In this document: one piece after another, positions 5,177-50,283 of the stretch
Position numbering within the stretch: the first letter of the stretch is position 1
Layout of the letters: each line of letters opens with the position of its first letter
Source of the DNA: Pelomyxa schiedti
Lineage: Eukaryota; Protista; Evosea
Assembly: GCA_020536535.1 (NCBI GenBank)
Contig: JAHLWZ010000388.1
Span: 1-50,399, forward strand
DNA: 50,399 nucleotides
Direction of reading: 5' to 3'
Made by a program: the position numbers and the translations under genes
Notes under the pieces: model-generated
The model's database searches: none
Seen by the model: only the letters and a program-made list of their open reading frames with translations
Told to the model about the DNA's origin: nothing

Positions 5177-8100
5177 CTATACCCAATTCATGCTGAGTAT
5201 CTGGGACATTGTGGGACGGGCGTTGGGATCACTGGCCCAGCAATTCACCACGATGGTCTTGGCCCAACTGGGTAGTTCCGGTGCCGGCGGTGATTTCGGC
5301 AATTGTGGGAGTATCTTGCCGAGCGCCAGGTCCCGCACAATGTCTGAGGGTCTCATGGTAGCCTGCCGGTTTCTGTGAACCCGGAAGTATGCTGAGTAGG
5401 CCTCGAGGTGGCTGAATGGCGAACTTATGGGATCCATCAGCTTGAATACCACGGTGGCTGTATTTTATTAGTAGGACCGGCAAAATGGGGTACTTACCAA
5501 AGCTCCAAACATCAGCCTTCGTGTCATACTTTTCACCATTGAGAACTTCGGGAGCATAAATTTCCAACACTGGCGCATCTCCAGCGGTGCCTCGCTGCGA
5601 CTGCGATGCATCAGAATACAGAACTTGAGACAGCCCGAAATCGGCAATCTGTTGGGTGATAAGTGATTTGTGGGACAAGGAGAGGATTGCAACCCAACCT
5701 TTGCCCAAGGGCCTGGCCCAGTTTCGTCCAATGAGGAAATGAAAATGTTCCCTGTGGTGGTGATATATTAATACTCTCTCTCTGCCGCGGAAGTTAAAGA
5801 AGACGCGAACCTGTGTGGAGATCACCGTGAACGATTGGGGGAGTCTGTGAGTGCAAATGTTCCAACCCACGTGCAACATCTTTCAGAATTTTCACTTTCA
5901 TGGTCATGGGAATGATTCTATCCAAAAGCTGGGTGGTGTTTTCACCTTTTTCAAGGCACACCCGGATGAGATCGCTCAACTCAGGCTTCTTGATTTTTGT
6001 GTCTTCCAAGATTTTAATGAGAGGAGGAACAATGGGAACGACGAGTTCCGTGACCAACCACAGGTGTGGGTGAAGGCACGCACCATAGAACTTGACAACA
6101 TTTGGATGTGAAGATACCACATTTAAAACTGACATCTCAAAGATAAATCGTGCGATGGATTGATATGTGAGTTCCCCCAACGGTTGTTTTACAGCAACAG
6201 GCAAGCCCTTCCGTGTTGCCCTCATCACTTGCCCAAACCCACCTTTGCCCACTGGTGTTTGGGATTGAAACTCGATTTCAGTTGGATCGATCACAGGCAG
6301 GTGTTCAAGGAGTATGTCTGGTGCAACTTCCGTAAGCTTCACGTCAACTTGCTCTGTCTGATTGTCTGGTGGGCAACGAAGACATTTCATCCCATATCGT
6401 GCAGCATCAAGCACAACTCTTTGCGGGAAACATGTGATGTTGGGTGGAACGCTGAACACCGGCAGCTGCACAGCAGGTTCCAAGGAGGTTGGGGTGGCAG
6501 ATTGATGCAGGAAGCGAAGCAAACAGTGAGGGCAGGGGAAAGACACATCTGCATTCGCTGCAAGGCCAATGTAATAGGACTCGATGAATTGAGTGATCAA
6601 AGTGGTTACATAAATTATCAAGCTCTTCCTTTTCCACAGTGCCGTTTCTTCTTTGCTTGTGACTGTTGGTTCAGATCCAAGAGATGGATCAGGTGCCTCC
6701 TCAATTGTGGTTCGCATGCAAATGTTGATTGTGTGTTGCTTGGCCTCGTGTGTCATAATCAACTTCTGCTTTGTGATGGAGGAGGATGTTGAATCTTGAA
6801 AACTGAGATTCTCAACGATAAGACCTTCGTTCCATGAAAACAGAGGGGCAGTTTCTGGAATTCCAAGCACCATCACCATCAACCTTGGGAAAAACCCGAT
6901 CGGGAGAAAGCGGAACTTGAGTATTCTCCCACTCATGACGACCTTGGTGCCTGCCCCAGTGGGTGCGGTCCAAAATGAGGCCGCTTCTGCACTTCCCTCA
7001 GAATAGCGAAGCGCCAGGTCCGGGAGAAGGGAAGGAACTAGTAGCCGGCCATCAGGCAGGGTGAACAGGATTTCAAAAGTCTGAAGCAGCTCAATAAGGG
7101 TAGCATGGTGTTCAGGGTAAAAAGAAGAAAAAACATGACGGATAGACTGGGGGAGCACGAAACCATATGTGACCCAGCTAGTTGTTCGTATGCCGATTAC
7201 TGATGTCATCACCTTGGAGAGGTATGAAGGTTTCAGCACAATCAACTCAGAAAGAGGGATTCCCGTTTTTTTCTTCAGTGAACATACTTGATTTTCAGAA
7301 GATGTGTTGTGTAATTTGTGTCTGAAATGTATGATACTCCCTGCATCCAAAAGGAAGTCAGAGCACATGGTAATTTCTCGTTGCTCGTAACCATCACACT
7401 TCCCAACACCCTTAGCTTTTGCAATTGCAACATATTCATCCCAATGTAATGTCTCAGCCAGCATACTGGCGAGATGCTTGTGCAATTCAACCCAGTTCGA
7501 GGGGACATCAATCTTCTGTTGTTTTGCAATTTCCTCCAATCTCTCAGAAACACGCTCCACAGCAGTCATGGATACACAACTGGCCTCTGTTTCAGTGTTC
7601 ATGATAATACCATCACCAGTGGCCACACTCAATCCAAAAACACTGTCAAACTGCTTGTCATGAGCTCTCATAATCTGGGCCAAAGCAGCACAGGCAGATT
7701 TGGTTGTGGTTTTGTCAAGGTGCGTTCCAACCAGAAGGATGTGAACCTTCTCACTGTGGCCTGTGGTGTCTGTTCTGTTTGAAGTTGCTTGCCTGAATGA
7801 CAGGTTTATCTGATCAACCCAATACTTGATCTTTGGTGGAAGTATCACAGATTCAGATTCACCATCCCATTGAACAAGTGCCAAATCGAAAATTAGCAGG
7901 AACACGGAGCTGCTGCGCAAGAAGAACTGGTGTGTTGGGTAAAGCACATCTTGACCTCCTGCAGTTTGCGTTACTCAATTAAAGAGTGGAAACGAGTGGT
8001 GGGGCAAACACACCCAAGTCCCAGGCAACCCACGTGTGACCACTGCGTCTGTTCAACTTGAATGGCAGAGTAAAAGAAATACCATCAGTGGCCATGTTTT

Positions 8101-11100
8101 TTTTCACATTGGTTGTGTTCCTGCGCTCCGTCAGGCACCTCAGCAGTGTTGTTTTTCCAACGGCACCATCACCCACCACAAGAAGCTTGTGACGCTTCCA
8201 CGCAACAGGCTCACCACTGTACATTACAGACTGTTTCAGAGTGTTCCATTTCTCCGCTCTGGACCGGCTTGGGATTGTGTCCTGTGGATTTTCCACCAGA
8301 TACATGCTGAGTATCTGGGACATTGTGGGACGAGCACGTGGGTCGCGGACCCAGCAGTTCTCCAAAATGGTCTTGGCCCAACTGGGTACTTCTGGTGCCG
8401 GTGGAGATTTTGGCAATCGTGGGAGTATCTTTCCAAACCCCAGGTCCCGCGAAATTTCTACAAAGTTGAGAACAGCCTTGTGGTGCTTTTGAATTCGGCA
8501 GTATGTGGGGTCGGCCTCAAGGTGGCTGAAGGGGGAACTTATGGGATCAACCAGGTTGAAAACAGTCATTGCTGTAGTTGTTTTGGTTTTGTTGTAAGAG
8601 TGGGAGGAATGATGGATGAAGAAGTGTTTACCAAAACTCCAAACATCAGCCTTCGTGTCATACTTTTCACCGTTGAGAACTTCAGGACCATAGGTGAAGA
8701 CCTTGCCCTCTAATGAGCTTCTCGTGGACTTAGATTCTCCGGAATATAGAACTTGAGACAACCCGAAATCGGCAATCTGTTGGATGATAAGTGATTTGTG
8801 GGACAAGGAGAGGAGTTGCGAGTCAACCTTTGCCCAAGGGCCTGGCCCAGTTTCGTCCAATGAGGAAATGAAAATGTTCCCTGTGGTGTGATATATTAAT
8901 ACTCTCTCTGCCACTGAAGTTAAAGAAGACGTGAACCTGTGTGGAGATCGCCGTGGACGATGGGGGGATTCTGTGAGTGCAAATATTCCAAGCCACGTGC
9001 AACATCTTTCAGAATTTTCACCCTCATGGTCATGGGAATGATTCTATCCAAAAGCTGGGTGGTGTTTTCACCTTTTTCAAGGCACACCTGGATCCAACCC
9101 TGCAAGTCCGGCTTCTTGATTTTTGTGTCTCCCAGGATTGTCATGATACTTGGGGGAACAATGGTAACGACGAGTTCCATTACCAACCACAGGTGTGGGT
9201 GAAGGCATGCGCCATAGAACTTGACAACATTTGGATGTGAAGATACCACATTCAGAAGGGTTGTCTCAAAGATAAATTGTGTGATGGATTGATATGTGAG
9301 TTCCCCCAACGGTTGTTTTACAGCAACAGGCAAACCCTTCCGCGTTGCCCTCAACACTTGCCCAAACCCACCTTTGCCCACCGGTGTTTGGGATTGAAAC
9401 TCGATTTCAGTTGGATCGATCACAGGCAGGTGTTCAAGGAGTATGTCTGGTGCAACTTCCGTAAGCTTCACGTCAACTTGCTCTGTCTGATTGTCTGGTG
9501 GGCAACGAAGACATTTCATCCCATATCGTGCAGCATCAAGCACGACTCGTTGCGGGAAACGTGTGATGTCGGGTGGAACGCTGAACACCGAGGAGGTTGG
9601 GGTGGCAGATTGATGCAGGAAGCGAAGCAAACAATGAGAGCAAGGGAAAGATACATCTGCATTCGCTGCGAGGCCAATGTAATAGGACTCGATGAATTGA
9701 GTGATCAAAGTGGTTACATAAATTATCAAGCTCTTCCTTTTCCACAGTGCCGTTTCTTCTTTGCTTGTGATGGTTGGTTCAGATCCAAGAGATGGATCAG
9801 GTGCCTCCTCGATTGTGGTTCGCATGCAAATGTTGATTGTGTGTTGCTTGGCCTCGTGTGTCATAAACAACTTCTGCTTTGTGATGGACGAGGATGCTGA
9901 ATCTTGGATACTGAGATTCTCAACGATAAGACCTTCGTTCCATGCAAACAGAGGGGCAGTTTCTGGAATTCCAAGCACCATCACCATCAACCTTGGGAAA
10001 AACCCGATCGGGAGAAATCTGAACTTGAGTATTCGCCCGCTCATGACGACCTTGGTGCCTGTCCCAGTGGGTGCGGTCCAAAATGAGGCCGCTTCTGCAC
10101 TTCCCTCAGAATAGCGAGGCGCCAGGTCCGGGAGAAGGGAAGGAACTAGTAGCCGGCCATCAGGCAGGGTGAACAGGATTTCAAAAGTCTGAAGCAGCTC
10201 AATAAGGGTGGTGTACTGCTCGGGGGGAAACTCCTCAAAAACATGGTGAATTTTCTTCTGTTCCACAAATCCGTTTGTGAACCAAGTTGTTGTCTTGATA
10301 CTAATGACAGATGTCATCACCTTGGAGAGGTATGAAGGTTTCAGCACAATCAACTCAGAAAGAGGGATTCCTGTTTCCTTTCTTTTCCGCCAGCAGCTTG
10401 ATTTTCGAGAAGATGTGTATAATTGATTGCTGTGCCTGAAATGTATGATGCTCCCTGCATCCAAAAGGAAGTCAGAGCACATGGTAATTTCTCGTTGCTC
10501 TGTGGTATCATACTTCCCAACACCCTTAGCTTTTGCAATTGCAACATATTCATCCCAATGTAATGTGTCAGCCGACATGCTGGCGAGATGTTTGTGCAAT
10601 TTAACCCAGTTCGAGGTGACGGCAATCTTCTGTTGTTTTGCAATTTCCTCCAATCTCTCAGAAACACGCTCCACAGCAGTCATGGATACACAACTGGCCT
10701 CTGTTTCAGTGTTCATGATAATACCATCACCAGTGGCCACACTCAATCCAAAAACACTGTCAAACTGCTTGTCATGAGCTCTCATAATCTGGGCCAAAGC
10801 AGCACAGGCAGATTTGGTTGTGGTTTTGTCAAGGTGCGTTCCAACCAGAAGGATGTGAACCTTCTCACTGTGGCCTGTGGTGTCTGTTCTGTTTGAAGTT
10901 GCTTGCCTGAATGACAGGTTTATCTGATCAACCCAATACTTGATCTTTGGTGGAAGTATCACAGATTCAGATTCACCATCCCATTGAACAAGTGCCAAAT
11001 CGAAAATTAGCAGGAACACGGAGCTGCTGCGCAAGAAGAACTGGTGTGTTGGGTAAAGCACATCTTGACCTCCTGCAGTTTGCGTTACTCAATTAAAGAG

Positions 11101-14100
11101 TGGAAACGAGTGGTGGGGCAAACACACCCAAGTCCCAGGCAACCCACGTGTGTTCGCTGAGGCTGTTCAACTTGAATGGTGGAGGGATAGAAACTCCATC
11201 AGTGGCCATGTTTCTTGTCACATCGGTTGTGTTCATGTTCTTCCTCAGGCACCTCAGCAGTGTTGTTTTTCCAGCAGCACCATCACCCACCACAAGAAGC
11301 TTGTGACTCTTCCACTCAACAGGCTCGCAATTGTGCATTACAAACTGCTTCATTGTGTCCCATTTCTCAACCCTGAACCTGTCTGGGATTGTGTCCAGAG
11401 GATTTTCCATCAGATTGACAAATTTGACCTTGTGCAGCCACTGTGGAAGTGCACTCAGTTGGTTAAAGGACAGGTCAAGTGACTTGCAGCAAGCCACACA
11501 CTTCAAACTTGGGTGAATAGAGGGCAAATTGAGGAAGGACAGGTCCACGTCTTGATGTGACAATGCTCCAGAAAGACCAACTTCCTTCACTGCATTCCAG
11601 TTGTGGGCCTGAACCCACATTCGAAACAACCTTGAGACAACTGCCAGCAGTTTAAAACCTGGCTTCAAGTTCAATAAAATATCAAGCAGTTGGCGCACTG
11701 CAGTTGGTCCCATGTCCCTCACATTGACACCATTTTTGAAAATCAATGATTCCACAATCTCTCGGAATTTGGTGGAATTAGAAGCTGTGAGTAAGGCAAC
11801 TTTCAGAACTTCTACACATGAACCCTCATCCTTTAACACTGTTGGCACGTTTACGTGCAGGAGTGAGCGAATTCCAGTTGAGGGCTCTAACTGAATGCCT
11901 TCTTTGAGGGAGCTCCCCACCATTTCTCCTGAGCTGGAGGCAATGGCCAACATGGCATCAACGGTGTCTTCTGCTTGCCTTGCCCAAATTGGGAGATACT
12001 GTTGCACAGCATTCAACACAATGTCCAGTTTTGTGCTGTCACCCACTGCAACACAACTCCGCATCGCTTTCTTGAAATTGGAGCGATCTCCCGAGTTGAG
12101 GTTGAATTCAGTGATCACTGAATTATAAAGAGAAATATTTTCACCAGTGAGATACCCAGGTCCATGGTTCTTCACTGTTGAAAAAGGAAGAACGAGAACA
12201 GTCGAGAGAGCCAAAGACAGTTAAAAAAAAAAAAAAGAGAACACCAACACACACAGATGGGAATGCAAAGGCTTTGGAGAATCTTGTTTCCTTCGTTTCC
12301 AGCAAGAATCGCTGAAATATTCAAGGTGAATATTGGAGATTACGACTTTGCAGGCGTCAAACAGGCAGGGGGTTTCGTACCTGTCCAATCTTGGACCACC
12401 TGATCCTCGTTTGTTGTTATTGTTGTGTCATAAATAACAGTCAATTTCTCGATCCTTCTGTTTCGCTTCAAAGCGGCAAAAACAGTGGAATCAATCCAAC
12501 TCCCTTTTTATTTCCAGTGTGAGTGTGTGGGGAAGAGAAAGAGAAAATTAAAAAGAAAAGGGAAAAGGACAAGTAAAAAGGACAAGAAAAGGGATACAAT
12601 GAAGTTGCAGTTCTGTGATGCTGAAGTTTGTTCCCAAGAGTGTAACAAACTGTTTGAAGTCCTTGTCCTCACATTTTGTGTTTCCTTTTTGAGAATGAGG
12701 AAGAAGAAACCAATGTAATATGATGGAAGAAGAGAAAGTGAAACTGGAAATGTCGAGTGATGAGAGTTGATCCATGAGCCTGAAAAGCCACTTCTCACTT
12801 CCTTGGGTCAGTGAATCTGGCAGTGGTTAGTGAGTGATACTCGGTGGGAGGAAGAAAGGGAAGGCTGGGGGAGAGAAGGCACTCTGGAGACTCAAACTGA
12901 AGTCATTCCTCTGGAAAGATTGAACAGCTTTGACAACGGCTTTTACAGCACGCTCTGAGAGCACAAAGTCTGCCACCATGGTTTTTGTTAATATTTCAAA
13001 GAATGGGTGTGGGAGAGCAAACCGGAGAGAGAGAGCGATTTCAAGGAAGTGCAAGAACTCAGGTGTGTTGATATTGCCTCTTCCAATTTTTCTTGTTCGA
13101 GTCGATTGAAACCTGTCAAGCACGAACAATCAATTGGTTTGGCTTGAATGTTTGGAAAAATCATGGGAGATGATACTGATTGAGGATCCAATTGCACAAT
13201 ACTGGAGTTCGGTGCATTGAAAAACGGAGGAGAGCAACTCATTGTCAGCCACAGTCAAACCTTTCAACATTTCAAGTAAATGCAAGCCCCCCAAATTTGC
13301 AGGTTTTTTTGTGGAAAATAGTTGAGTTGGTTCACACAAACTTTTCAAAGAAAACTTTGAGCAGATATCTCTTTGGTCAGATATAATCTTGGTCAGGACT
13401 TTGCAGTCACTGAAGCTGTAATAACCTTGATCTCAATTTTAGATGTGTGATGAGAAGTGGTTTTTTGAGTAATTAGCAGGGAGATGACGAAACCGATGTC
13501 AATCACGACTTCGCCATTTGCCTGACTGATGATACTTTGGCTGTCCCTTGTTGTCCACGAATATCGGAAACTTTCCGGCCCATTTGCCGCTGTATTTGAG
13601 CCTTTCTTTTAATACATGGATCGTGTCATTTGGGGATCTAACCTGGGTTTGGCTCAAACTGCGTTTTTGTGCTGAAACCACCGATTTTGGCACCTTTGTG
13701 TGCCTCCCTCAGTATGTCTGTGAGGGTTGTTGCACCTGTCCACTCGGTGATTGTATCGGCGCAAACCTAAAAAATAAATTAATTTATTGTACTCACCAGT
13801 GAACCAATTAAAAAAAAAAATAAATAAATAAAATCTCATAACGTGCATTGGGGACATATACCATCGAAGCCATGGCAAAGCACTCAAGCAACCCAATTGT
13901 TGCACAGGGAGCAAGTGAATGGGAAGCAGAATGGTCAGGATCGAAACCAGCAACAAAAAACAGGAATGGCTGATGTGTTGCCCTGTTTTTTGCCCACAAA
14001 CTCCCATAAAGTAATTCCAAAGTTTCAGGAATTGCATCAAAGAATGCACGATCATTTGGAGTGCAAACAACAAGAACAGCTTTCATTGTTCCCTGTGCAC

Positions 14101-14606
14101 ATCCTTGGAACTCTTGGGGCCTAAGAATAATCCCTTATTTCTTTTTCTGTTGTTTTACTTTGTTCGTGTAATTTTAATAAATAAATGTAAATTAATAAAT
14201 AAAACGCAACAAACAAAACAACAACAATAAATAATACTAATCATAACAACAACAACAATTATGCATACCTGTCCACGTAAATCAATTCAATTGCCTTGTG
14301 CTGCCCCAGCGGCGCCAGCACGCCTGCGCCCCCCTGCGCACCGCCCCCCCCGCCACCCTTGTTGTTCCCCTTCCCTTTCCCGCGGGAGCGGCGGCCACCC
14401 CGACGAGTCGCTGCGGCGTCGTCCTCCCCCCCCTCGGCGGGGGCTGCGCGGACGAGGCGGTCCAGCGCGTCGGGGGAGGGTGCCACCACGTAGCACTTTG
14501 GCGGCGCGTTCTCGCCGTCTTCTTCGTGTGGCTCCCCGTCTCCTCGCACGGCGTGTGGGTGTGGGTGTGGCGGTGCGGGACTGCTAGTACTCGTTGGTGT
14601 GGACAT
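5177..14606 (-). CDS. Roco-family kinase A, multi-exon: degenerate GTPase-like N-terminus, LRR-like region, ROC-COR-kinase, then a second ROC-COR-kinase
   Basis: ATG at 14606. ROC G1 GDGAAGKTT (ORF 11093..12214) and GDGAVGKTT (ORF 7979..8914); G3 WDLG|GQD across an intron; G4 GTHLD. Kinase motifs GKGGFG, VAVK, HGDLHTGN (spliced), DFG, (A/G)PE and DVWSFG occur in both modules. Manual exon phases were checked for the first exons (14606-14269, 14120-13862, 13766-13643, 13601-13494). Confidence 0.88.
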
Positions 14607-14918
14607 GTGGTAAGTTGGTTTGAGTTATTTTGTAAGTTCGTTTCGACGCATCGCAACAGTTGCCGCTACATCTCTGTGATATCACCTTCATACGCGGTTC
14701 CCTGAAAACTGTGTTGATAGGAAAATAAGGCAAGAAATTTCATTGAAAACTGTTTAGTGTACGGGTCATCTGTTGGGGACAATTGGTGGTTTTTTGTCTT
14801 GAGGTGATTGGTTATTGTTGTTGTAGCTCCTCAGGGAAATGGGTGAGAACGAATGTTCTGGTTCCACATGGTTGATACCAACTAGTTGTCTTTTCAATGA
14901 AATCAAACCAGGAGGAAA

Positions 14919-15813
14919 ATGTCTGCAGCGGCACCCCAGCAGGTATGTCGTCTGCGTTTGTGCCCGGTTGTTTTATCCAAGTCTCAATTCCACAGCAGTG
15001 CACACTTTTTGAGGCAGAGCGCAATGTCATCAAAACACTGACTGCCTCTAATCCAATGAAAGCAGGGGAGATTTGGTTCCTCATCTCATCGACTTGGTTC
15101 AAGAGCTGGAAAAAATACGTATCATACTTTTACTTTCCCTCATGCTCATCTGGCTGGGGTGCTGTATGTTATTTGCACTTATTTCTTTGGTGGGGTTTGA
15201 ACCAGGGTTAGGCAACACCCAGACCAGGACCGATCCGAAATAGTGAGCTCCTTGGGGAAGACGGTGAGCTCAAACATTCCGTGTTGGAGCTGACACACTA
15301 TGAGGTGGTCAGTGGTGTTGTGTGGAATACACTGAAGGGATGGTATTCTGGTGGGCCTGACATCCCTCGTCCTGTGATTTCCTTCCTTGGTCTGTACGGA
15401 AATGTTTGTCTCTCAGTGGAGCTGCAGCCACTGAGACTGCACATTGTTAAATCATCTGATACAACGGCTTCTGTGTTGGCATACTTCAGCAGAATTGACA
15501 CTGTTGGTCATCTTAAGGTACACTTCAAGCATAAGCACAAGTATAATTGACACCAGAAAACAATGTGTGAGAGAATGGGATTGGAGCCAGACAACATCCA
15601 CGTGTGGGACTACCACGGCGGCTCTTGGCTCAAGAAGCTTCATGATACGCAAACTCTGCACTCTGAACAGATTATTAACAACCAAAAGGTACTTCGAACA
15701 ATACTATGTTTCTAGAAAATAATCCTTCCTTGCAGGTTATGCTGGCTGAAAAAAATGATGCTGGGCTTTGGCCAAGCCATGGACGAGTGTATTTTGGTGT
15801 TTCCAATAGCTAA
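14919..15813 (+). CDS. Stand-alone DUSP + Ubl domain protein (USP4/11/15-type N-terminus without a catalytic domain), copy 1
   Basis: Spliced product MSAAAPQQ..WFLISSTWFKSWKKY|ATPRPGPIRNSELL...HYEVVSGVVWNTLKGWYSGGPDIPRPVI...VELQPL (DUSP), then FSRIDTVGHLK|KTMCERMGLEPDNIHVWDY...|VMLAEKNDAGLWP (Ubl end motif), with a stop at 15811-15813. Confidence 0.8.
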
Positions 15814-15931: not shown

Positions 15932-16260
15932 GTGACATAGACAAGGACCAATCCATGCTGAGTATCTGGGTCACTGTGGGACGGGCACGTGGATCGCGGA
16001 CCCAGCAGTTCTCCAAAATGGACTTGGCCCAACTGGGTAGTTCACGTGCCGGCGGCGACGATTTCGGCAATTGTGGGAGTGTCTTGCCGAGCGCCAGGTC
16101 CGCGCAATGTCGGAGGGTATCATGATAGCCTGCCGGTTTTGATGAACTCGGAAGTACGCCGAGTCGGCCTCAAGGTGGCTGAACGGGATCCATCAGCTTG
16201 AACACCATCATTGCTGCGAAAGGGTTTTTAGTATTTTGATGAAGGGAAGAAGTGGGATTT
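15932..16260 (-). pseudogene. Remnant of the last Roco kinase exon and last intron (duplicate of 19112-19456)
   Basis: Aligns to the 3' end of Roco B (ENCWVRDPRARPTVTQILSMDWS). A ~10-bp deletion after LMDP shifts the frame. Homology stops at the intron donor (gtgggattt, 16260). Confidence 0.88.
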
Positions 16261-25100: not shown

Positions 25101-25621
25101 AGTAGTAGTAGTAAATACAGGTTACTAGTGCCGGACAAACCCCCACCCCACCCCATGCGCACACACCTGTCCACATAAATCAATTCCATGGAGTTATCAA
25201 CCCCCAACTGCACCACCACCCCCCCCTGCCGCTCCCCCTCCCCCGTGTCCCCCTGTGCCCCACCCCCGCCCCCCCCTTGTTGTTCCCCCCCCTTGTTGCC
25301 CTTGCTCCCCTTGTTCCCCTTGTTCCCCTTGCCCCCCTTCCCCTTCCCCTTCCCTCCTGCGCCCCCACGCCCGCGGCGCCCGCCCCCCCGAGTCGCTGCA
25401 GCGTCCTCCTCCGCTGCTGCCAGGACGAGGCGGGCCACCGCGTCGGGGGAGGGTGCCACCACGTAGCACTTGGGCGGCGCGCTCTCGTCCGGCGGCGCGT
25501 CTCGTTCCTCGTGGTGGTGGCGGCGCTCGTCGGGGCGGCTACCACTCGTGGTGGTGTTGGTTGTTGTCGCGTCGTCCCCCTGGGCGTCTTGGGGGATTGT
25601 CGCTGTGGGGGTCTTGGACAT
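19125..25621 (-). CDS. Roco-family kinase B (degenerate GTPase-like N-terminus, LRR-like region, ROC, COR, kinase)
   Basis: ATG at 25621. GDGGVGKTT in ORF 21982..23139; ROC-COR-kinase N-lobe in ORF 19742..21985; DFG/APE exon in 19424..19648; last exon 19125..19403. The glycine loop is altered (SQGCFG) and VAVK reads VVVK. Confidence 0.88.
23875..23946. repeat. Intronic (GGGAAAAA)n microsatellite in Roco B
   Basis: Directly visible 8-mer repeats; a polypyrimidine tract on the coding strand. Confidence 0.9.
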
Positions 25622-32800: not shown

Positions 32801-33636
32801 GAGCTCCATCCATCCACCCACACACATACACGCACACACCTGTCCACATAAATCAATTCAATGGACTTATCAACCCCCAGTTGCACCACCTGACCCTTCA
32901 CACTACCACCACCACCTGCATCCCCTCCTTTCCCCTTGCCCCCTGTCCCCGTACCCCCCTTGCCTCCCCCTCCTCCGGTCTCGCTCTCGCTCTCGCTCTC
33001 GCTCCCGTACGCCCCCGTGCCCGTGCCCGTGGGCGTGGCCGCGGCCGCCGCGGTTGGCTTGTCCACCACCACCGCCGGAGACGCTCGTGGGGTGGCGGGG
33101 CTGCTGGGGATGGCTGGCGAGGCCGATGGCGGGGGTGGCGCGGGGGCTGCCGCGGCCGCCGCTTCCTTTGCGGCGCGGACGAGGCGGTCCAGCGCGTCGG
33201 GGGAGGGTGCCACCACGTAGCACTTTGGCGGCGCGTTCTCGGCCGGGTCGTACTCCCCGCCGTACTCCTCGTCGTTGTCTTCTTCCTCATCCTCCTCCTC
33301 CTCCTCCTCCTCCTCCTCTTCTTCTTCCTCCTCCTCGTCCTCGCCGCCGCTGTCGTCACCACCATCGGCGGCCCCCCCGGCGTCGCGGTCTCCTTCGTGG
33401 GCGCCTGGTGGGACGGCACCCTGCGGATGGGGCTCGGGATCGGGCGGCGGGGGGGCGCTCGTGGTAGTGGTAGTTGAGGCGGCGGCGGTGGTGGTGGTGG
33501 TAGCCGCGTCGTCGCCGGGGTGTCCGGGCTCGTCTTGGGGGGTAGGTGTATTGGACTTGGACGACCTGGATTTGGATTTGGATTTGTACTTAAGGGATGG
33601 GGGTGTGGATGTGGACGTGGAAGTAGATGTCGACAT
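26891..33636 (-). CDS. Roco-family kinase C (degenerate GTPase-like N-terminus, LRR-like region, ROC, COR, kinase)
   Basis: Likely ATG at 33636 (MSTSTSTS...). GDGGVGKTT in ORF 29804..31087; ORF 27467..29764 has GTHLD, GKGGFG, VAVK and HGDLHTG; DFG/SPE exon; TAA at 26891-26893. Confidence 0.88.
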
Positions 33637-33709
33637 TGTGATCAGTTGGTTCGCTTCTTTTTGTTTTTTTTTTTCCGAGGAAACGTTGATGTAATGCATA
33701 AACAACACA

Positions 33710-39645: not shown

Positions 39646-40593
39646 TCAGAACAGGGAAAAACGGGCACCAACGCTCTTTGAGAGCCAAGGGGACTGGGTA
39701 CCCTTTGACTGTGTTTGCACCATCAGAATGGTGTCGTCAATGATGTCCCCATTGTCCAGTGCTGGCAGCCACCCCAGCCCCAACTCCTCAAAGTTCACTG
39801 AGTGGCGCACGATCGGGGCACCCCTGGCCCCAAGCATCTCGCTGATCAGGGGCAGGTTGCGATCAGACACCTTTCTGCGTGTGGGTGTGATGTAGTAGTA
39901 CACTGGTTCATCTGCAGTTGCACCATCTCTGGCCAGCAACAAGGCCTTGTTGAGAGTGTGAACGCAGAATGCCATGAACCAAGGGACCCCTTTGCAAGGC
40001 CCGGCCACAGGGCATGGGGAAGTAGTCACCAGGCACACTCAGCTGCCTGGGGCAGCCCTCTGGGCTTGGCAGCAGCAATTCAATTCAGCGCCAGCATCAA
40101 CCGCCGAAACGGCGGGCATAAAGGAAGATAATACAGCGTCGAACCTGAGCTCCATCACGGAAGCGCCTGGTGCTACGAAAATAAAGAGGTGGTGTCTCAT
40201 AGTCAACTCGCCCAAATCGTCCGCCCCTAAGGAGTCGTCGTCATTCACGGTGGTGACGCAGATGTGGAAGTCAAAGCTGTCCGCCGAGACCTTCAACGGC
40301 GACGATGGTGGGCATGGGGAAGGGGAGGGAGAGGCAGAGGCAGAGGGAGAGGGAGGAGGGGCACAAGGCAGGGGGAGGACTACGTGCCTGAAAACCGAGG
40401 TAACGCCGCAGGCGCGGAGGAGGAGCTCCACCAGGAGCGAGTACGGGGCAAGTTGGGGTCGGAAAGAGAGGCAGCAGCGGCTGTTGGGCCTGGTGTATGC
40501 CTGAGATGTGTACCGGGCCTCCCGGATCGTGGGTCCTTCGTTGTCGCCCATTTGCTTGGCCGCTCGGGTCGTGGATCCTTGGTTGTTGCCCAT
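39646..40593 (-). pseudogene. Internally deleted paralog of the SAM/caspase-like gene
   Basis: MGNNQG...LAPYSLLVELLLRACG, an in-frame TGA at 40039-40041, then YYYITPTRRKVSDRNLPL...LDNG fused directly to DIIDDTILMVQTQ...RFSLF*. 39559-39751 duplicates 36588-36780. Confidence 0.85.
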
Positions 40594-40776: not shown

Positions 40777-41708
40777 ATGGCAGCAGCGACACTCCCGCCG
40801 GTTTGGTGTCTGCGTTTGTCCCGATTCTTGTATCCAAGTCTCAATTCCACAGCAGTGTGCACCTTCTGAGGCAGAACGCGATGTCATTAAAACACTGACT
40901 GCCACTCATCCAATGAAAGCTGGGGAGATTTGGTTCCTCATCTCATTAAGATGGTTCACTTGCTGGAAAATTTACGTTTCATACTATTGCTCTCCCTCGA
41001 GCTCATCTGGTTGCGGTGCCGTATGTTCTTTGCCCCATATTACAAAAATGATTCATATAATTCATGTTCTTTGAAGGGGTTGTTTGAACACTCTAGTTAG
41101 GCCCCCAGACCAGGACCGATTTCGAACAGTGATCTCCTTGAGGAAGATGGTGAGCTCAAATATTCTGTGTCGGAGATGACACACTATGAGGTGGTCAGCG
41201 GTGTTGTGTGGAATACACTGAAGGGATGGTACTCTGGTGGGCCTGACATCCCTCGTCCTGTGATTTCCTTCCCTGCTCTGTACGGAAATGTTCGTCTCTC
41301 GGTGGAGCTGCAGCCACTGAGACTGCACATTGCCAAATCATCTGATACAACAGCTTCTGTGTTGGCATACTTCAGCAGAATTGACACTGTTGGTCATCTT
41401 AAGGTAGAGACCATTTTCAAGCAGAAGTACAATTATAATTCACTCACACCAGAAAACAATGTGTGAGAGAATGGGATTGGAGCCAGACAACATCCACGTG
41501 TGGGACTACCACAGCGGCATTTGGCTCAAGGAACTTCATGATCAACAAACTCTGCACTCTGAACAGATTCTTCACAACCAAACGGTTATTCTTGATAATA
41601 TGCTTCCAATAATGGACAAAAAGAAGTTTAATGGTTGACTAGGTTATGCTGGATGAAAAAAAAGATGATGGGTTTTGGCCAAGCCGCAGGAGATACTACT
41701 ACCCATAG
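40777..41708 (+). CDS. Stand-alone DUSP + Ubl domain protein, copy 2
   Basis: MAAATLPP|..WFLISLRWFTCWKIY|..PRPGPISNSDLL...WYSGGPDIPRPVI...FSRIDTVGHLK|KTMCERMGLEPDNIHVWDY...|VMLDEKKDDGFWPSRRRYYYP* (TAG at 41706-41708). Confidence 0.8.
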
Positions 41709-41920: not shown

Positions 41921-44760
41921 TTAACTTTGTTCACAGTTTTTTCTGTCGAAAATCCTGAGGAGCTGAGTCATTGTGGGACGGGCGTTGGGATCGCGAACCC
42001 AGCAATTCACCACGATGGTCATGGCCCAACTGGGTAGTTTGGGTGCCGGTGGTGATTTTGGAAGTTGTGGGAGTATCTTGCCGAGTGCCAGTTCTCCTGC
42101 AACGCGCATGTCGATCATTTGAGCCTGCCCATTGAAAAACCGGAAATATGTGAAATCAAGGTGGCTGAAGGGCGAATTTATGGGATCCATCAGCCTGAAA
42201 ACAGCCATTGCTTTATTTATTTTTGTGTTGGTTAGGGCTGTTGCTGCACAAAAAGGTATTTACCAAAGCTCCAAACATCAGCCTTTGTGTCAGACTTTTC
42301 ATGATTGAAATCTTCGGGCGAATATACTTCCAACTGTGCCCGGCCAAAGGCGTATCTCCGACTCTGTGCTGCTCCGGAATAAAGAACTTGAGACAACCCA
42401 AAATCAGCAATCTGGTATCAGCTAGTGAGCAATATCGAACAACAGTAAAAAGTGGAACCTTTGCCCAAGGGCCGGGGCTGGATTCATCCAAGGAGCAAAT
42501 AAAAATGGTTCCTGTGAAGCATTACTCTCTATAAAATTAAGGAAGGAATAATAGAACCTGTGTGGAGGTCACCGTGAACAATGGGAGGTTTCCGGGTGTG
42601 CAAAAATTCCAGGCCCCGAGCCACGTCTTTCAAGATCTTCTTCCTCATGCTCATTGGAAGGACTTGGTCCAAGAATCGGGTGCTGTTTTCCCCTTTTTCA
42701 AGACACACCCGCACCAAGTCGTTCAAGTCCGGTTTCTTGATTTTAGTGTCTCCAAGAAGTTTTATGACACTCGGTGGAATGATGGGACAAACAAGCTCCA
42801 TCACCAAGTAAAGGTTCGGGACAAGACAAGCACCATAGAACTTGACAATATTTGGATGTGCAGAAACTGCGTTCAGAAGTGTTGCCTCAAAGATGAACGC
42901 TGCAATGGCTTGGGGTGTGACCACCTCCTCCAATGGTTGTTTTACAGCCACGGGTTTGCCCTGATATGTTGCCCTCAGCACTTGCCCGAAACCACCTCTT
43001 CCCAATGGTTGCTGGGCGGATATCTCGAGTTCTGCAGGAGCAATCACAGGCAAGTGCTCGAGGAGGATATCTGGTGCAATTTCTGTCAGCTCCACTTCAA
43101 CACTTTCTGTCTTGTCAGCTTGGCAAAGCAGATACTTCGTTCCTGATTTTGCAGTTTCAAGGACTGTTCTTTCGGGGAAACATGTTGTGTTTGGTGGCAG
43201 GCACACAACACTATGTACAGGTTGTTGTGTTGGACCAAAACGCAGGAATTGAAGCAAGCAATGAGGGCAAGGAAAAGAGGTATCCAATCCATTTAATAAA
43301 TCATTGTAGGAATACTCCATGAATTGCTTGATCAAAGTCATCACGTGGAGTATCAAGCTCTTCCTTTTCCACAGTGGTGTTTCTTCTTTGGTGATATTCA
43401 GTGCTGACCCTTGGGGTGAATTCGCTGGCTCCTCAATTGTGGTTTGCATGCAAATGTTGATTGCATGTTTTTTGTCTTTTTCCGTTGAATGTTGCATGAC
43501 CTCGTGTGTCATAAGCAGTTTCTGCTCTATGACGGACGAAGAAGCTGAATCTTGGATACTGAGATTTTCAATGATAAGACCTTCATTCGATGCAAACAGA
43601 GAGACTGTTTCTGGAATTCCAAGCACCATCACCATCAACCTTGGGAAAAACCCAATTGGTAGAAAGTGGAACCTGAGAACTCTCCCGCTCATGACAACCT
43701 TGGTGCCTGTCCCAGTGGGTGCGGTCCAAAATGAGGCTGCTTTTGCACTTTCCTCAGAAGAGCAATGCGTGAGGTCCGGAAGAAGGGAGGGAGCTACTAG
43801 GCGCCCGTCGGACATGGTGAACAGGATTTCAAAAGTCTGCAATAGCTCAAGAAGGGTGGCATGCTGTTGAGGGGGAAATTCAGCAAAAAGCTGAGGGATA
43901 TTCCTCCGGAGCACAAAACCATTTGTGACCCAGCCAGTTGTTCGTATTCTGGTCACTGATGTCATCACCTTGGAGAGGAAAGCTGGTTTCAACACAATCA
44001 AGTCAGAAAGTGCCATCCCAGTTTTCCTCCTCAGGAAAGCTGAGTCTGACTTAGGCGAAGATTGCCCCATCAGAGTGCTGCACACTTTATTGTGGTGCCT
44101 GAAATGTATGATGCTCCCTGCGTCCAACAGGAAGTCAGAACACATGTCAATTTCTCCTTGATCACTACCATCGCTCTGTCCAACACCCTTTGACTTTGCA
44201 ATTGCAACATAGTCACTCCAAATAAGCGTATCGTCTGGCATGGCTGTCAGGTGCTTGTGCAATTGAACCCAGTTTGATGATACAGTAATCTGACGGGTAT
44301 TTGCGATTTCCTCCAATTTGTCTGAAACTCGCTCCACAGCACCCTTGACACATATTGTTTCTGTTTCATCCAGTGCAATACCATCACCAGTGGCCACACT
44401 CAATCCAAAAACACCATCAAACTGCTTGTTATGAGATTTCATTATTGCTCGCAAAGCAAGGCAGGCAGGGAAGGGCTCAGTTTTGTCAAGGTGTGTTCCA
44501 ACAAGAACAATATGAACCTTCTCTTGCCTGAATGACATATTTATCAGATCCACCCAATACTTGATTTTTGGTGGAAGTATCACGGAATCACCATTCCAGT
44601 CAACAAGTGATAAGTCGAAAAGTAACAAGAAGACAGATCTGCTGCACAAGAAGAACTGATGTGATGGGTAAAGCACATCTTGACCTCCTGCCAAATTTTG
44701 TGTCACTCCATAAATAAAAAAAAAGGGGGAAAATGAGAGTGGTGGGGCAAACACACCCAA
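41921..44760 (-). CDS. ROC-COR-kinase module D2 (3' module of Roco D, or the end of a separate gene hidden by the gap)
   Basis: Begins at the gap edge with the ROC WDLG|GQD intron. ORF 42529..44928 has GTHLD, GRGGFG, VAVK and HGDLHTG; DFG/SPE exon; TAA at 41921-41923. Confidence 0.82.
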
Positions 44761-44860
44761 NNNNNNNNNNNNNNNNNNNNNNNNNNNNNNNNNNNNNNNN
44801 NNNNNNNNNNNNNNNNNNNNNNNNNNNNNNNNNNNNNNNNNNNNNNNNNNNNNNNNNNNN
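44761..44860. other. Scaffold gap (100 N)
   Basis: Run of 100 N between two ROC-COR segments. Confidence 1.
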
Positions 44861-47800
44861 GGGGGATATTCAGCAAAAACCTGGGGAATTTTATTCTGTT
44901 CCACAAGACAAGCCCATTTGTGAGCCAACCAGTCATCTTGATACTAATGACCGAAGTCATCACCTTGGAGAGGTATGAAGGTTTCAGCACAATCAACTCT
45001 GAAAGTGGTATTCCCGTTTTTTTCTTCAGTGAGCATAAGCTTGATTTTCGTGAGGAGATGCTGTGTAATCTGTGATGCCTGAAATGTATGATGCTCCCTG
45101 CATCCAACAGGAAGTTGGAGCACATGGTAATTTCACCTTGATCAATAACGTCACTATACCCAACACCCTTTGACTTTGCAATTTCAGTATATTCATTCCA
45201 ATGTAATGTGTCAGCTTGCATATGGGCGAGATGTTTGTGCACTTCAATCCAGTTCGAGGAGACTGCAATCTTCTGTTGTTGTGCAATTTCCTCCAATTTC
45301 ACAGAAACACACTCCACAGTGGTATGAGATACACGGACCTCTGTTTCATTCATGATAAGACCATCACCAGTGGCCACACTCAATGCAAAAAGACCATCAA
45401 ACTGCTTGTGATGAGCCAAGGCACTGCAGGCAGATTTGGTTGTGGTTTTGTCAAGGTGTGTTCCCACCAGAATGATGTTAGCCTTCTCACTGTAGCCTGT
45501 GGTGTCTGTCCTGTTTGAAGTTGCTTGATTGAATGACATTTTTATCAGATCCACCCAGTACTTGATCTTTGGTGGAAGTATCACAGATTCACCGTCCCAT
45601 TCAACAAGTGACAAGTCGAAAAGTAACAAGAACACAGAGCTGCTGCACAAGAAGAACTGATGTGATGGGTAAAGCACATCTTGACCTCCTGCAAAATTTT
45701 GTGTCACTCCATAAATAAAAAAAAGTGAGAAATGAGAGGTGGGGCAAACACACCCAAATCCCAGGCAACCCATGTGTGTTCACTGTGGCTGTTCAACTTG
45801 AATGGTGGAGGGATAGAAATACCACCAGTGGCCTCAGTTTTTGTCACATCGGTTGTGTTCATGTTCTTCCTCAGGCACCTCAGCAGAGTTGTTTTCCCCA
45901 CACCACCATCACCCACAAGTAAAACCTTGTGACTCTTCATTGTGTCCCATTTCTCAGCCCTGAACCTGTTTGGGATTGTGTCCAGTGGATTTTCCATCAG
46001 ATTGACAAAATTCACCTTGTGCATCCACTGTGGAAGTGCACTCAGTTGGTTGAAGGACAGGTCAAGTGACTTGCAGCAAGCCACAAATTCCAAAATGGGG
46101 GGAAGAGTGCGCAAATTGAGGAAGGACAGGTCCACGTCCTGATGTGACAATGCTCCAGAAAGACCAACTTCCTGCACTGCAGTCCAGTTGTGGGCCTGAA
46201 CCCACACTCGAAACAATCTCGAGACAACTGACAGCAGTTTAAAGCCTGGCTTGAAGGTCAGTAAAATATCAAGCAGTTGGCGCACCGCAGTTGGTCCCAT
46301 GTCTCTCACATTGACACCATTTTTGAAAATCAATGATTCCACCATCTCTTTGAATTTGGAAAGATCGGAGGCTGTCCGGATTGCAGTTTGAAGAAGTGTG
46401 ACACATGATTCCTCATCTTGGATGACTGTTGGCACTTTTACCGTTTTTACTGTTGGGTCTGGATTTGGAATTCCATACGAGAGCGCTAACCTTTTGATGG
46501 TGCTCCCCACCAGCCCTCCTGAGTTTGCTGCAATATCCAACATGATATCAATTGCATCTTCTTCTTGTTCTGGTCCTGCCCAAATTGGGAGATACTGTTG
46601 GGCAGCATTCAACACAATGTCCAGTTTTGTGCTGTCACCCACTGCAACACAACCTCGCATTGCTTTCTTAAAATGGGAGCGAACTCCCGAGTCAAGGTTG
46701 AATTCAGTGATCACTGAATTATAAAGAGAAATATTTTCACCAGTGACAGGCTCAAGGTTCTTAACTGCAGAAAAGAAAGAATGAGCACAGTTCAGTGAGA
46801 GGGTGACAGTTTAAAAAAAAAAAAACAAAAGAGAACAAACACACAGATGGGAATGCAAAGGCTCCTGAGAATCTTGTTTCCTTCAAGTACTGCTGAATAA
46901 TACACAAGGTGAACATGTTGGAGATGACGTGTTTGGGGGGTTTCACACCTCTCCAATCTTGGACAACCTGAGCCTCGTTTGTTGTTATTGTTGTGTCATA
47001 AATAACAGTCAATTTCTCAATCCTTCTGTTTCGTTTCAAAGCGGCAAAAACGGTGGAATCAATCCAACTCCCTTTTTATCCAGTGTGAGCAAGTGGGGGA
47101 AGAGAAAGAGAAAACTAAAAAGAGAAAAAGGGAAAAGGGAAAAGTGAAAAGTGAAAAGGGATACAATGAAGCTGGAGTTCTTTGATGCTGAAGTTTGTTC
47201 CCAAGAGTTTCGCAAATTTTTCTATGGCCTCAGTCTCACATTTTGCGTTTCCTTTTTGAGAATGAGTAATCAATTTAAAGTATGATGGGGGAGCAGAGAA
47301 AGTGAAACTGGAAATGTCGAGTGACGAGAGTTGATCCATGAGCCCGAAAATCCACTTCTCACTTCCTTGGGTCAGTGAATCTGGCAGTGATCAGTCAGTG
47401 AGACTCAGTGGGCTCGGAGGAGAAGGCTGGGGGAAGAGAGAGAACACACTCTGGAGACTCAAACTGAAGTCATGCCTCTGGAAAGAATGAACAGCTGTGA
47501 CAACGGCTTTGACAACACGCTCTGAGAGAACAAAGTCTGCCACCAGATATTTTAGTGTTAACCATCACACTCACAAAGGAAAAAGGAAAAAGGAAAAAGG
47601 AAAAAGGAAAAAGGAAAAAGGAAAAAGGAAAAAGGAAAAAGGAAAAAGGAAAAAGGAAAAAGGAAAAAGGAAAAAGGAAAAAGGAGATCACAAACCAGAG
47701 AGAGAGAGCGATTTCAAGGAAGTGCAAGAACTCAGGTGCGTTGATATTGCCTCCTCCAATTTTTCTTGTTCGGGTTGATTGAAACCTAAACAATCAATTG

Positions 47801-49333
47801 GTTTGGCTTCAATGTTTTGAAAAATCATGGGGGGATGATACTGATTGAAGACCCGATTGAGCAATACTGGAGTTTGGTGCATTGAAAAACGGAGGAGAGC
47901 AACTCATTGTCAGCCACAGTCAAACCTTTCAACATTTCCCAAAGTAAGTGCAATTTGTAGTTTTTTGTGGGAAACAGTGTTGGGTTGGTTCACAAACTTT
48001 TCAAAGAAAACTTTGAGCAGATGTCTCTTTTGTCAGACAAAATCTTGGTCAGGACTTTGCAGTCACTGAAGCTGTAATAACCTTGATCTCAATTTTAGAT
48101 TCGAGGTGAGAGGTTGTTTTTTGCGTAGTTAGTATCAAGGAGATGACTAACCGATGTCAATCACGACGTCATCATTTGCCTGACTAATGATGTTTTTGCA
48201 GTCCCTTGTTGTCCACGAATATCGGAAACTTTCCAGCCCAGTTGTTGCTGTATTTGACCCTTTTTTTGATCATGAATGGGTAAACTGTATTCATTTGGGG
48301 ACAAACCAACCTGGGTTTGGCTCAAATTGCGTTTTTGTGCTGAAACCACCGATTTTGGCACCTTTGTGTGCCTCCCTCAGTATGTCCGTGAGGGTCGTTG
48401 AACTTGTCCACTCTGTGATTTTATCGGCGCAAAACTAAAAAATAAATGAATAGAGCTCTCATACAGTGTATTGGGGCCAGATACCATTGAAGCCATGGCG
48501 AAGCACTCAATCAACCCAACAGCTGCATGGGGAGCAAGTGAATGGGCAGTATTGTCTGGATTGAAACCAGCAACAAAAAACAGGAATGGCTGCCGCGTTG
48601 CCCTGTTTTTTGCCCACAAACTCCCATAAAGTAATTCCAAAGTTTCAGGAATTGCGTCGAAGAATGCACGATCATTTGGAGTGCACACAACAAGAACAAC
48701 TTTCATTGCTCCCCGTGCACATCCCTGGAACTCTTGAGGCCTAAAAATTCCTTATTTTTTACTTATGTCGTTTTACTGTGGTTCTATACCATAAAGTAAA
48801 AGAATAAAGGCAAACAAACGAAACAATAAAAGGAGGCACGATTATGTACTAATTATGCACCTGTCCACATAAACCAATTCGATTGACTTGTGCGGCCCCA
48901 GCGCCGCCGCCGTGTCCCCCTGTGCAACACCCGCGCCCCCGCCGCCTTCCCCCTCCTTGTTGCCCTTGCTCCCCTTGCTGCCCTTGCTCCCCTTGCTGCC
49001 CTTGCTCCCCTTGTTGTTCCCCTTCCCGCGCATGACGCGGCTGCGGCGGCCGCGGCCACCTCGGGCCGCTGTGGCGTCCGCCCCCTCCCCCTCGGCGAGG
49101 GCTGCGCGGACGAGGCGGTCGGCCGCGTCGCGGGAGGGTGCCACCACGTAGCACTTGGCCGGCGCGGGCGCGTCTGGCCCCTCGTCGCCATCGCCGCCGC
49201 CCTCCCCGTCGCCTCGCTCGGCGGGTTGCTGGTGTGGGCGTGGGTGTGGCGGAGGCGTGGGGCTAGTAGTACTCGGGGTGGTTGTTGTTGCTGTGGTGAC
49301 CGCGTTGTCCCCGCTTGTGGGTGTCTTGGACAT
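44861..49333 (-). CDS. Roco D, 5' part (degenerate GTPase-like N-terminus, LRR-like region, ROC, start of COR), possibly frameshifted
   Basis: ATG at 49333 (MSKTPTSG...KCYVVAPSRDAADRLVRAA...ELVYVDR). GDGGVGKTT in ORF 45704..46714; ROC/COR in 44703..45773. A 5-bp duplication at 44903-44912 shifts the frame. Confidence 0.8.
47578..47685. repeat. Intronic (GGAAAAA)n microsatellite, about 15 copies, in Roco D
   Basis: Directly visible perfect 7-mer array. Confidence 0.95.
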
Positions 49334-49539
49334 GTTGATTTCGAATCACACCCAGAGTGGGTTCCAAACTGTTCCCAGGTGGTCTCAAAAGTGGAGAAAG
49401 TGAGAGGTAAAATCACAACGGGCTCGATGTGGGAGCTCCCAATGTTGGTGGTTTTAGCACTGAAGTTGTTGTGGTTGTCACAGAAGGTGGAGTTTGAGGT
49501 ACTTCTTGAACACCACATGTTGGTAGGAGTTGTATGTCA

Positions 49540-50283
49540 TCATCTCTTAGAGGTGGTGGAGCTATTGGAAATCAAGTGGTTCTCATCCACAAGTTTCCAC
49601 CTCCAATCATCGTTGAACTCTGTACCAGCCAAGAAGTTGGTAAAAGCATCCAAAAGGGTTGTCTTCCCAGAACCAGTTTCACCGATCACCAGGAAGGTGT
49701 AGTACTTCTTTGTGTAATACTTCTTAGATGGGTACTGAAACAGTGGTAAAGTGGGACCTGCCCGCTTTATGGTGAGAAGCTTGCATCCCTCGGGGGGAGG
49801 TCTTGGTGGCCTCACTAATGTTGAAATGTGGCGGTGAACGAGGTAAACTTTGCCTGGAGAAGAACTGCATAATAGCTGAATAATCTTCTCTGATGAATAG
49901 CCGGCCTCAATAAACTCACATATTGCAGCTTTCTCACTGTCTAACAAAGTAGCGGCAGGAGCACCGTCGAGAGCTGCAGCTGTGACTGGTGTATTAGTAG
50001 CCTCCACTGAGACCGACTGTGATGTCGAGGAGGTCAGGGAAGGGACTGTGACAGGGACTGATAACGCCCTGAGGGCGTCGAGTAGTTTCTTCTTGTTGCC
50101 GAATTTTAGTCCAGACTCAGCCAGAAGGTCGGCCTGGTCATCACTAGGAAGACCACTCAGAACGGCGAGGGAGTCAAAGCCCAGCGAAATAAGCTTGTCA
50201 AACAGTTGCTGGGACAATTCAGGCGGTTGCAACTTGAGTCCCTGGCACCACAAGTTGAGCCTCTCCCCCTCATTCCCTGACAT
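49540..50283 (-). CDS. SAM-like domain plus truncated septin/AIG1-like P-loop GTPase (probable pseudogene)
   Basis: Likely start MSGNEGER (50283). SAM-like LNLWCQGLKL...LISLGFDSL...SGLKFGNKKKLLDAL, then FLVIGETGSGKTTLLDAFTNFLAGTEFNDDWRWKLVDE, then a stop before any G3 (DTPG-type) motif. Confidence 0.65.
   Translation of the reverse strand: MSGNEGERLNLWCQGLKLQPPELSQQLFDKLISLGFDSLAVLSGLPSDDQADLLAESGLKFGNKKKLLDALRALSVPVTVPSLTSSTSQSVSVEATNTPVTAAALDGAPAATLLDSEKAAICEFIEAGYSSEKIIQLLCSSSPGKVYLVHRHISTLVRPPRPPPEGCKLLTIKRAGPTLPLFQYPSKKYYTKKYYTFLVIGETGSGKTTLLDAFTNFLAGTEFNDDWRWKLVDENHLISNSSTTSKR

Follow-up and report, generated by a model that had tools for sequence, protein, structure and literature searches.

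A tandem array of Roco kinase genes with in-frame double modules, beside caspase and DUSP-Ubl genes, on a Pelomyxa schiedti scaffold

Scaffold JAHLWZ010000388.1 of the assembly GCA_020536535.1 of Pelomyxa schiedti, an anaerobic amoeba, was analysed to its full length of 50,399 nucleotides, and this entire scaffold is called the window. It carried four Roco genes on the minus strand with six Roc-COR-kinase modules, and two of these genes were in-frame double Rocos. We consider it moderately probable that these genes arose by birth and death as the tandem array of a single Pelomyxa-specific Roco subfamily, located in a duplication-prone stretch that gathers lineage-specific, fast-expanding signalling families. 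The original prediction, made from the sequence letters of this region, had described a diversifying receptor-kinase/protease system for innate immunity or cell death. Its four Roco loci were confirmed by Pfam matches to COR-A and kinase together with the Roc P-loops.

The Roco units were head-to-tail segmental duplicates of approximately 6.3 kb, and the DNA identity between them was 72-89% in self-alignment. Module B aligned with module A at 88.9% identity over 3149 bp and was read in frame behind it. The open reading frame (ORF) at 7982-9043 passed from the kinase C-lobe of A into the Roc domain of B with no stop. The product P0002 of another contig, JAHLWZ010001366.1 (L003, 7241 bp), began in the last exon of the upstream kinase and read through in the same way as A-B. 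The copy nearest to module E1 was gene D. Intron positions were kept across the copies, before GGQD, after HTG, before IADFG and after DVWSFG. Gene D was also considered as a pseudogene owing to the stop at 29804-29806. This was rejected, since the stop was located inside the conserved in-frame intron before the GGQD exon. The first exon of each full copy was of low complexity, yet it contained the conserved motif PPKCYVVAPSPDALDRLVRAA ... IELIYVDR.

The domains of the Roco copies were examined with Pfam profiles and motifs. COR-A was found directly after Roc (48-61 bits; cut-off 35.3). For the kinase, the score was 49-56 bits (cut-off 23.1). COR-B, at 16.9-24.3 bits, was under its cut-off of 27. 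Roc gave 20.8-23.9 bits; its coding sequence is interrupted by an intron, which explains why the score was under the cut-off of 27 bits. The copies were assigned to Roc by the motifs GDGGVGKTT, DLGGQD and GTHLDK, which were intact in all of them. The VAVK and DFG motifs of the kinase were intact in the array copies. The catalytic loop was VHGDLHTG, in which HGD replaces HRD, in B, A, C, D, E1 and L003. The same loop was observed in a 42% identical Roco paralogue at a separate locus (L004). The kinases had been predicted to be non-RD, and VHGDLHTG in every copy agreed with this. Approximately three LxxLxLxxNxL repeats were visible by eye in the alignment before Roc, where Pfam gave no leucine-rich repeat (LRR) match. 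The long N-terminal region matched no family. Since the P-loop, DxxGQ, THLD, VAVK, HGD and DFG were all intact, each Roco is predicted to be an active GTP-regulated kinase, which may dimerise through COR and receive input from the N-terminal region.

The Roco family includes LRRK2, the kinase linked to Parkinson's disease. The Pelomyxa proteins had in common with LRRK1, LRRK2 and the Dictyostelium Roco kinases the order LRR-Roc-COR-kinase (with the LRRs as judged by eye), the GxxxxGKT, DxxGQ and THLD motifs, a COR-A match above threshold, and VAVK and DFG. However, the catalytic loop contained HGD, whereas it is HRD or YRD in the LRRK family. The Pelomyxa Rocos also differed in showing only about three LRRs next to an N-terminal region of no matched family. 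In addition, two Pelomyxa genes had two Roc-COR-kinase modules per frame, and the genes stood in a tandem array.

The ratio of nonsynonymous to synonymous substitution (dN/dS) was calculated among the paralogues by the pairwise Nei-Gojobori method. In the Roc-COR-kinase exon, dN/dS was 0.28-0.48, and no 60-codon window exceeded 0.43. The exon before Roc gave higher values of 0.40-0.64, with a highest sliding window of 0.63. The synonymous distance (dS) was mosaic. In the pre-Roc exon it was 0.11-0.13 among C, D and E2. In the Roc-COR-kinase exon it was 0.48 for C-D, 0.44 for C-E1, 0.15 for A-B and 0.20 for D-E1. The mosaic dS and the dN/dS values fit gene conversion between neighbours with relaxed purifying selection, as read from these paralogue alignments, and do not fit diversifying selection. 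The genes had been claimed to diversify. With dN/dS of 0.28-0.64, this claim received no signal of positive selection, in a pairwise test that is weak. In contrast, the tandem birth-and-death character, with duplications, conversion and a pseudogene, was upheld by self-alignment, mosaic dS and the Roco 3' remnant at 15947-16260. The array resembled plant nucleotide-binding LRR (NLR) and receptor-like kinase (RLK) clusters in that its genes were duplicated in tandem and converted, and in that it contained partial copies and a dead remnant. Unlike those clusters, it showed no detected diversifying selection, and no ligand-binding repeat domain was visibly varying.

In the history of the array, a unit of approximately 6.3 kb was copied head to tail, comprising the long N-terminal region, the approximately three LRRs seen by eye, Roc, COR and the HGD kinase. 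Twice, a truncated copy was placed directly behind a full copy, and in-frame read-through gave two double Rocos, A-B and, by homology, E2-E1. Parts of neighbouring copies were later homogenised by gene conversion. A DUSP-Ubl gene, tail to tail with the Roco 3' end, was copied along. A caspase gene with an N-domain and a SAM-like segment, together with its fragment, two ORFs of a family X and one ORF of a family Y stand between the units.

The second double Roco was interrupted by a scaffold gap, and the origin of the assembly was considered here. It was obtained from seven whole-genome-amplified single cells, built with SPAdes in single-cell mode and then with P_RNA_scaffolder, and amounted to 52.4 Mb with 19,876 predicted proteins (PMC8887013). 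Runs of N were present at 679-778 and 44761-44860. Because P_RNA_scaffolder was used, these gaps are RNA-based joins of contigs. The flanks of the second gap, 43871-44760 and 44861-45757, could be aligned in the self-comparison, with 73% identity across 933 bp. When a Pelomyxa Roco protein was mapped, residues 258-506 fell on the right flank, and the left flank covered residues 258-976, thereby repeating this stretch. Read on the minus strand, COR-A came before the gap, and an intron with the GGQDVLY exon, which starts the C-terminal half of Roc, came after it. Crossing 44761-44860 thus steps approximately 300 codons backward in the Roco protein. Continuous single-frame sequence across this gap was therefore rejected, as the flanks were paralogous and Roco residues were repeated. 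Since the flanks overlap in the Roco protein, they represent the 5' part of module E2 and the 3' part of module E1. The annotated gap-spanning product of 1822 aa is incomplete because the gap joins these two partial modules.

Contig L003 was 95.6% identical to 39746-44760 and extended 427 bp beyond it. Its first 188 bp were a Roco 3' end, directly followed by a truncated Roco start, and this matched the A-B junction. By homology with A-B, locus E is taken to be a second in-frame double Roco. The remainder of E2 and the start of E1, approximately 2.2 kb, are probably hidden in the gap, judging from the copies.

The caspase gene of the window was Pelo_4796, and the ORF at 37792-39171 was 100% identical to this NCBI protein. 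Its Peptidase_C14 domain gave 53.9 bits, and that of its paralogue P0008 gave 84.8 bits (cut-off 21.4). RNA data were contigs from two single-cell runs and showed the splicing of Pelo_4796 only. In these contigs, minus-strand GT..AG introns were found at 36812-36857, 37455-37524 and 37631-37699. RNA contigs and two DNA runs contained a joint between 36894 and 37103 on opposite strands, and in the scaffold the block of 36894-37102 was inverted relative to the RNA contigs, the DNA contigs and the paralogue. The intron at 36915-36964 inside the block was GT..AG on the plus strand, and the plus strand of the block encoded NDVDEFRTRGF...YPTSPG, which matched P0008. A loose end of an RNA contig beside 36894 encoded ILDACRQ, a stretch missing from the scaffold. 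No inverted repeats were found flanking the block. The inversion with its lost edges is probably a chimera of amplification or assembly. The annotated Pelo_4796 of 662 aa has no catalytic Cys because this inversion lost the flanking letters. The catalytic His (FAGHG) was present in the scaffold, and the Cys motif was obtained from the RNA loose end and was present in P0008, P0012 and P0013. The real Pelo_4796 transcript retains both His and Cys.

Pelo_4797 was a mosaic fragment, and neither SAM nor the catalytic part of a caspase was found in it with Pfam. Read-derived DNA contigs departed from the scaffold at three positions, 39375, 39562 and 40902, and 40137-40333 was covered by none of them. 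Misassembly or a difference between haplotypes may affect the region of Pelo_4797. Two SAM/caspase loci had been proposed here. The C14 domain of Pelo_4796 was above threshold, but its SAM segment was below threshold, and Pelo_4797 had neither SAM nor the catalytic part. At 4585-7009 of L003, Pelo_17498 was a longer counterpart of Pelo_4797 with two tandem N-domains, and its annotated C-terminus was the SAM exon in a wrong frame.

These assembly faults were weighed against the array itself. Stitched haplotigs or chimeras could inflate the copy number and create fragments, and the amplification of seven cells with single-cell assembly and RNA-based scaffolding (PMC8887013) would permit this. 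It was consistent with the gap that joins two non-contiguous paralogous pieces, the inverted block, the departing DNA contigs with their uncovered interval, and L003 as a near-identical copy. However, the Roco units differed by 11-28% in DNA and had common introns and open frames, and for these reasons they are true paralogues rather than haplotigs. Approximately 75% of the words sampled from 36000-41900 were present in independent DNA contigs, and the A-B junction recurred in L003. We regard it as quite improbable that an assembly artefact accounts for a large part of the complexity seen here.

The fold and relatives of the caspase gene were then compared with known proteases. In a search of solved structures with the caspase-domain profile, MALT1 was the best match but weak (E 0.011-0.03), and a metacaspase gave E 0.34. 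A single-sequence PDB search with the caspase domain gave no match. Neither death domains nor immunoglobulin (Ig) domains were matched in Pelo_4796 by Pfam. The domain had been called a MALT1-type paracaspase. This was not sustained, as death and Ig domains were missing and the sequence link to MALT1 was weak. Pelo_4796 resembled the caspase superfamily, including MALT1 and metacaspases, in a C14 domain above threshold and in a dyad of the AGHG His and the ILDACR Cys, as given by P0008 and the RNA contigs. Unlike MALT1, its C14 domain was fused to a SAM-like segment and a Pelomyxa-only N-domain.

The N-domain of Pelo_4796 comprised a flavodoxin-like alpha/beta part and a conserved helical part. 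When 1.84 billion representatives were searched in full with HMMER, eight proteins were returned, all from Pelomyxa schiedti, and most of them also carried SAM-like and C14 parts. The AlphaFold2 model built from nine sequences was mediocre, with a predicted local distance difference test (pLDDT) of 60 and a predicted template modelling score (pTM) of 0.59, and an alignment of five sequences gave pLDDT 33. In the model, residues 21-174 are predicted to adopt a flavodoxin-like alpha/beta fold. VIA-align of these residues gave tied Z scores, namely 9.1 for the flavodoxin-like domain of a flavodiiron protein (6h0d), 8.7 for flavodoxin, and 8.2 for both CheY and the RPS4 TIR. Among language-model neighbours, the N-domain had only TIR clusters (0.82-0.86), a result taken as no more than a lead. 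No TIR was matched in Pfam at E up to 1 or in the profile search of PDB sequences. Foldseek against PDB and an atlas shape search with the N-domain gave only generic alpha/beta matches. The candidate catalytic Glu of TIR was not conserved among the N-domain paralogues. Thus, of the TIR-like label given earlier, the fold class was retained as a model-based assignment, and a TIR identity was unconfirmed, with no profile match and structural ties with flavodoxin and CheY.

SAM_1 gave 14.9-16.8 bits, under its cut-off of 23, and the position of this match was shared by P0006, P0008, P0010, P0012 and P0014. Pelo_4796 pairs a SAM-like segment with an alpha/beta domain at its N-terminus, whose fold is of the flavodoxin/TIR class, and in this it was similar to the SAM and TIR combination of SARM1. 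Unlike SARM1, there was no TIR match in Pfam or PDB, the candidate Glu was not conserved, and the effector was a caspase domain rather than TIR. Pelo_4796, with its MG start, may be a membrane-anchored protease that is activated by proximity when the SAM segments oligomerise. At 10001-12346 of another locus (L005), P0010 carried the N-domain and the SAM-like segment in 534 aa, and a separate Peptidase_C14 call of 152 aa followed 137 bp later. The two calls are probably one gene split by annotation.

The DUSP-Ubl genes were examined as neighbours of the array. The two genes that had been claimed were verified as stand-alone genes. Their DUSP domains gave 49.0 and 49.1 bits (cut-off 29.3), and the annotated 230-aa product had a weak precomputed match to Ubiquitin_3. 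The genes were 81% identical, with an exon dN/dS of about 0.46, and a brute-force search of intron sets gave many compatible models. Each gene was tail to tail with a Roco 3' end. The gene and the Roco 3' end were duplicated as a block, in which 14893-15778 with 15947-16260 matched 40755-41685 with 41952 onward, and L003 had the same DUSP-Roco order. Because the copies stem from one duplication event and an allele (L003), they cannot count as separate lines of evidence for linkage. The order of DUSP followed by a Ubl of the Ubiquitin_3 type was similar to USP4, USP11 and USP15. Unlike these, the Pelomyxa protein was of approximately 230 aa without the USP catalytic domain, and it was tail to tail with a Roco gene in all three copies, which have one shared origin.

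Neighbours within 10 kb were listed at six independent loci of caspase paralogues, including the window. A Roc-kinase gene was found at two of the six, the window and P0008. P0010 and P0013 had other kinases with no Roc, and P0011 and P0012 had no Roc. The genes had been described as one system of receptor kinases and proteases. The neighbourhood was indeed non-random, being a tandem array, but the proximity of Roc kinases at two of six caspase loci and the lack of a diversifying signal did not extend this to a joint system. Under the preferred explanation of a tandem Roco array, the co-location would mostly reflect shared history and a genome compartment, and wiring from kinase to protease is hypothetical.

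Two observations weigh against this explanation. P0008, a second caspase paralogue, was located 5 kb from an unrelated Roc-kinase gene. In addition, families X and Y recurred beside caspase and Roco genes, which may be more than hitch-hiking. Paralogues of family X adjoined the caspase paralogue P0012 (L007) and flanked the Roco P0004 (L004) on both sides. A 43% identical paralogue of family Y was located directly downstream of P0012. These paralogues around another caspase gene were newly seen, as were the two unannotated X ORFs and the Y ORF in the window.

Such recurrence bears on an integrated cluster held together by selection, in which Rocos would act as sensors or transducers, the SAM-caspase as executioner, and DUSP-Ubl with F-box-like X proteins as ubiquitin control. 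The domain types, namely a non-RD kinase, C14, a SAM-like segment and the flavodoxin/TIR-class fold, are typical of immune and death pathways. The nearness of the Roc-kinase gene to P0008 and the X-caspase-Y and X-Roco-X arrangements at other loci are consistent with it, and the host contains prokaryotic endosymbionts (PMC10579272). However, pairwise dN/dS gave no signal of positive selection, four of the six caspase loci had no Roc gene within 10 kb, the DUSP-Ubl copies were mutually dependent, and the TIR, MALT1-type and GTPase assignments were unconfirmed. We judge an integrated immune or cell-death cluster unlikely. A lineage-specific, genomically linked toolkit for surveillance and death, in which myristoylated N-domain-SAM-caspases neighbour X proteins (F-box/propeller-like), Y proteins (repeat-protein) and non-RD Rocos, is doubtful to a greater degree. 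If it were true, it might police obligate prokaryotic endosymbionts or invaders, with an independent NLR- or MALT1-like logic in Archamoebae. A functional link among X, Y and Roco genes, if real, would make this one of the few cases in which a free-living protist with endosymbionts has a death or immune module clustered in its genome.

The array of active-looking non-RD copies with double Rocos provides comparative material on how far Roc-COR-kinase proteins tolerate fusion and divergence. The N-domain-SAM-caspase family, with its Pelomyxa-only relatives, suggests proximity-activated proteases built from the organism's own parts. The public scaffold contained two errors that matter for its users, namely a gap that probably hides the approximately 2.2 kb and an inversion that removed the caspase Cys from the annotated protein.

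Table 1. Positions of the features in the window
Feature	Position	Strand	Description
Roco module B	5183..8301	-	truncated N-terminus (starts at about residue 155, P0001 numbering), then Roc-COR-kinase
Roco module A	8300..14624	-	low-complexity first exon, N-terminal region, LRRs, Roc-COR-kinase; self-aligned unit 8300-14593
DUSP-Ubl gene 1	14876..15778	+	DUSP 49 bits; stand-alone, without USP catalytic domain
Dead Roco 3' remnant (last kinase exon)	15947..16260	-	in-frame stop
Family Y ORF, 757 aa	16458..18728	+	no Pfam family; partial 92% copy at 1-678
Roco gene C	19130..25636	-	self-aligned unit 19130-25500
Roco gene D	26891..33636	-	annotated 1920 aa; self-aligned unit 26909-32757
Family X ORF, 418 aa	33829..35082	-	unannotated in GenBank
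Family X ORF, 483 aa	35086..36534	-	unannotated in GenBank
Pelo_4796	36675..39171	-	MG start, Pelomyxa-specific N-domain, SAM-like segment, Peptidase_C14
Inverted block in caspase domain, about 210 bp	36894..37102	.	opposite-orientation joints in RNA and DNA contigs
Pelo_4797, 263-aa mosaic fragment	39646..40593	-	a portion of the N-domain and the final 25 caspase-gene residues
DUSP-Ubl gene 2	40777..41708	+	annotated 230 aa; convergent with the Roco E1 3' end
Roco module E1 (Roc-COR-kinase)	41921..44760	-	5' side cut by gap; self-aligned unit 41952-44760
Scaffold gap, 100 N	44761..44860	.	self-comparison, Roco protein mapping, L003
Roco module E2	44861..49345	-	N-terminal region, LRRs, Roc, start of COR-A; 3' side cut by gap; unit 44861-49275
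Roco first exons	14262-14624, 25016-25636, 32770-33753, 48845-49345	-	low-complexity with PPKCYVVAPSPDALDRLVRAA ... IELIYVDR motif
P-loop ORF, 285 aa	49543..50397	-	runs off scaffold end; Walker A about 50 residues before stop

The two family X ORFs were 27% identical to each other, and an Atlas language-model lead to F-box/beta-propeller proteins was obtained at 0.86. The only GenBank call within 33829-36534 was a 99-aa gene on the opposite strand.

The P-loop ORF at the scaffold end had been called a SAM-GTPase gene. AAA_29 gave 30.8 bits, and many other P-loop families matched weakly, with only Walker A being matched. Septin-type clusters were low-score Atlas leads (0.77-0.83). A SAM-like stretch was seen by eye only, since Pfam gave no SAM match and hhalign against the SAM profile gave a probability of 0.3%. 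The SAM part of the name was thus unsupported, and a septin/AIG1 GTPase was unconfirmed.

At the scaffold start, 1-678 was 92% identical to the first approximately 650 bp of the family Y region (16253-16909) and was followed by the gap at 679-778. Beyond this gap, two consecutive ORFs at 996-1624 on the plus strand weakly matched the DDE_Tnp_4 profile of Harbinger/PIF-type transposases at profile positions 9-92 and 114-158. From these matches, they are probably a decayed or intron-split transposase.

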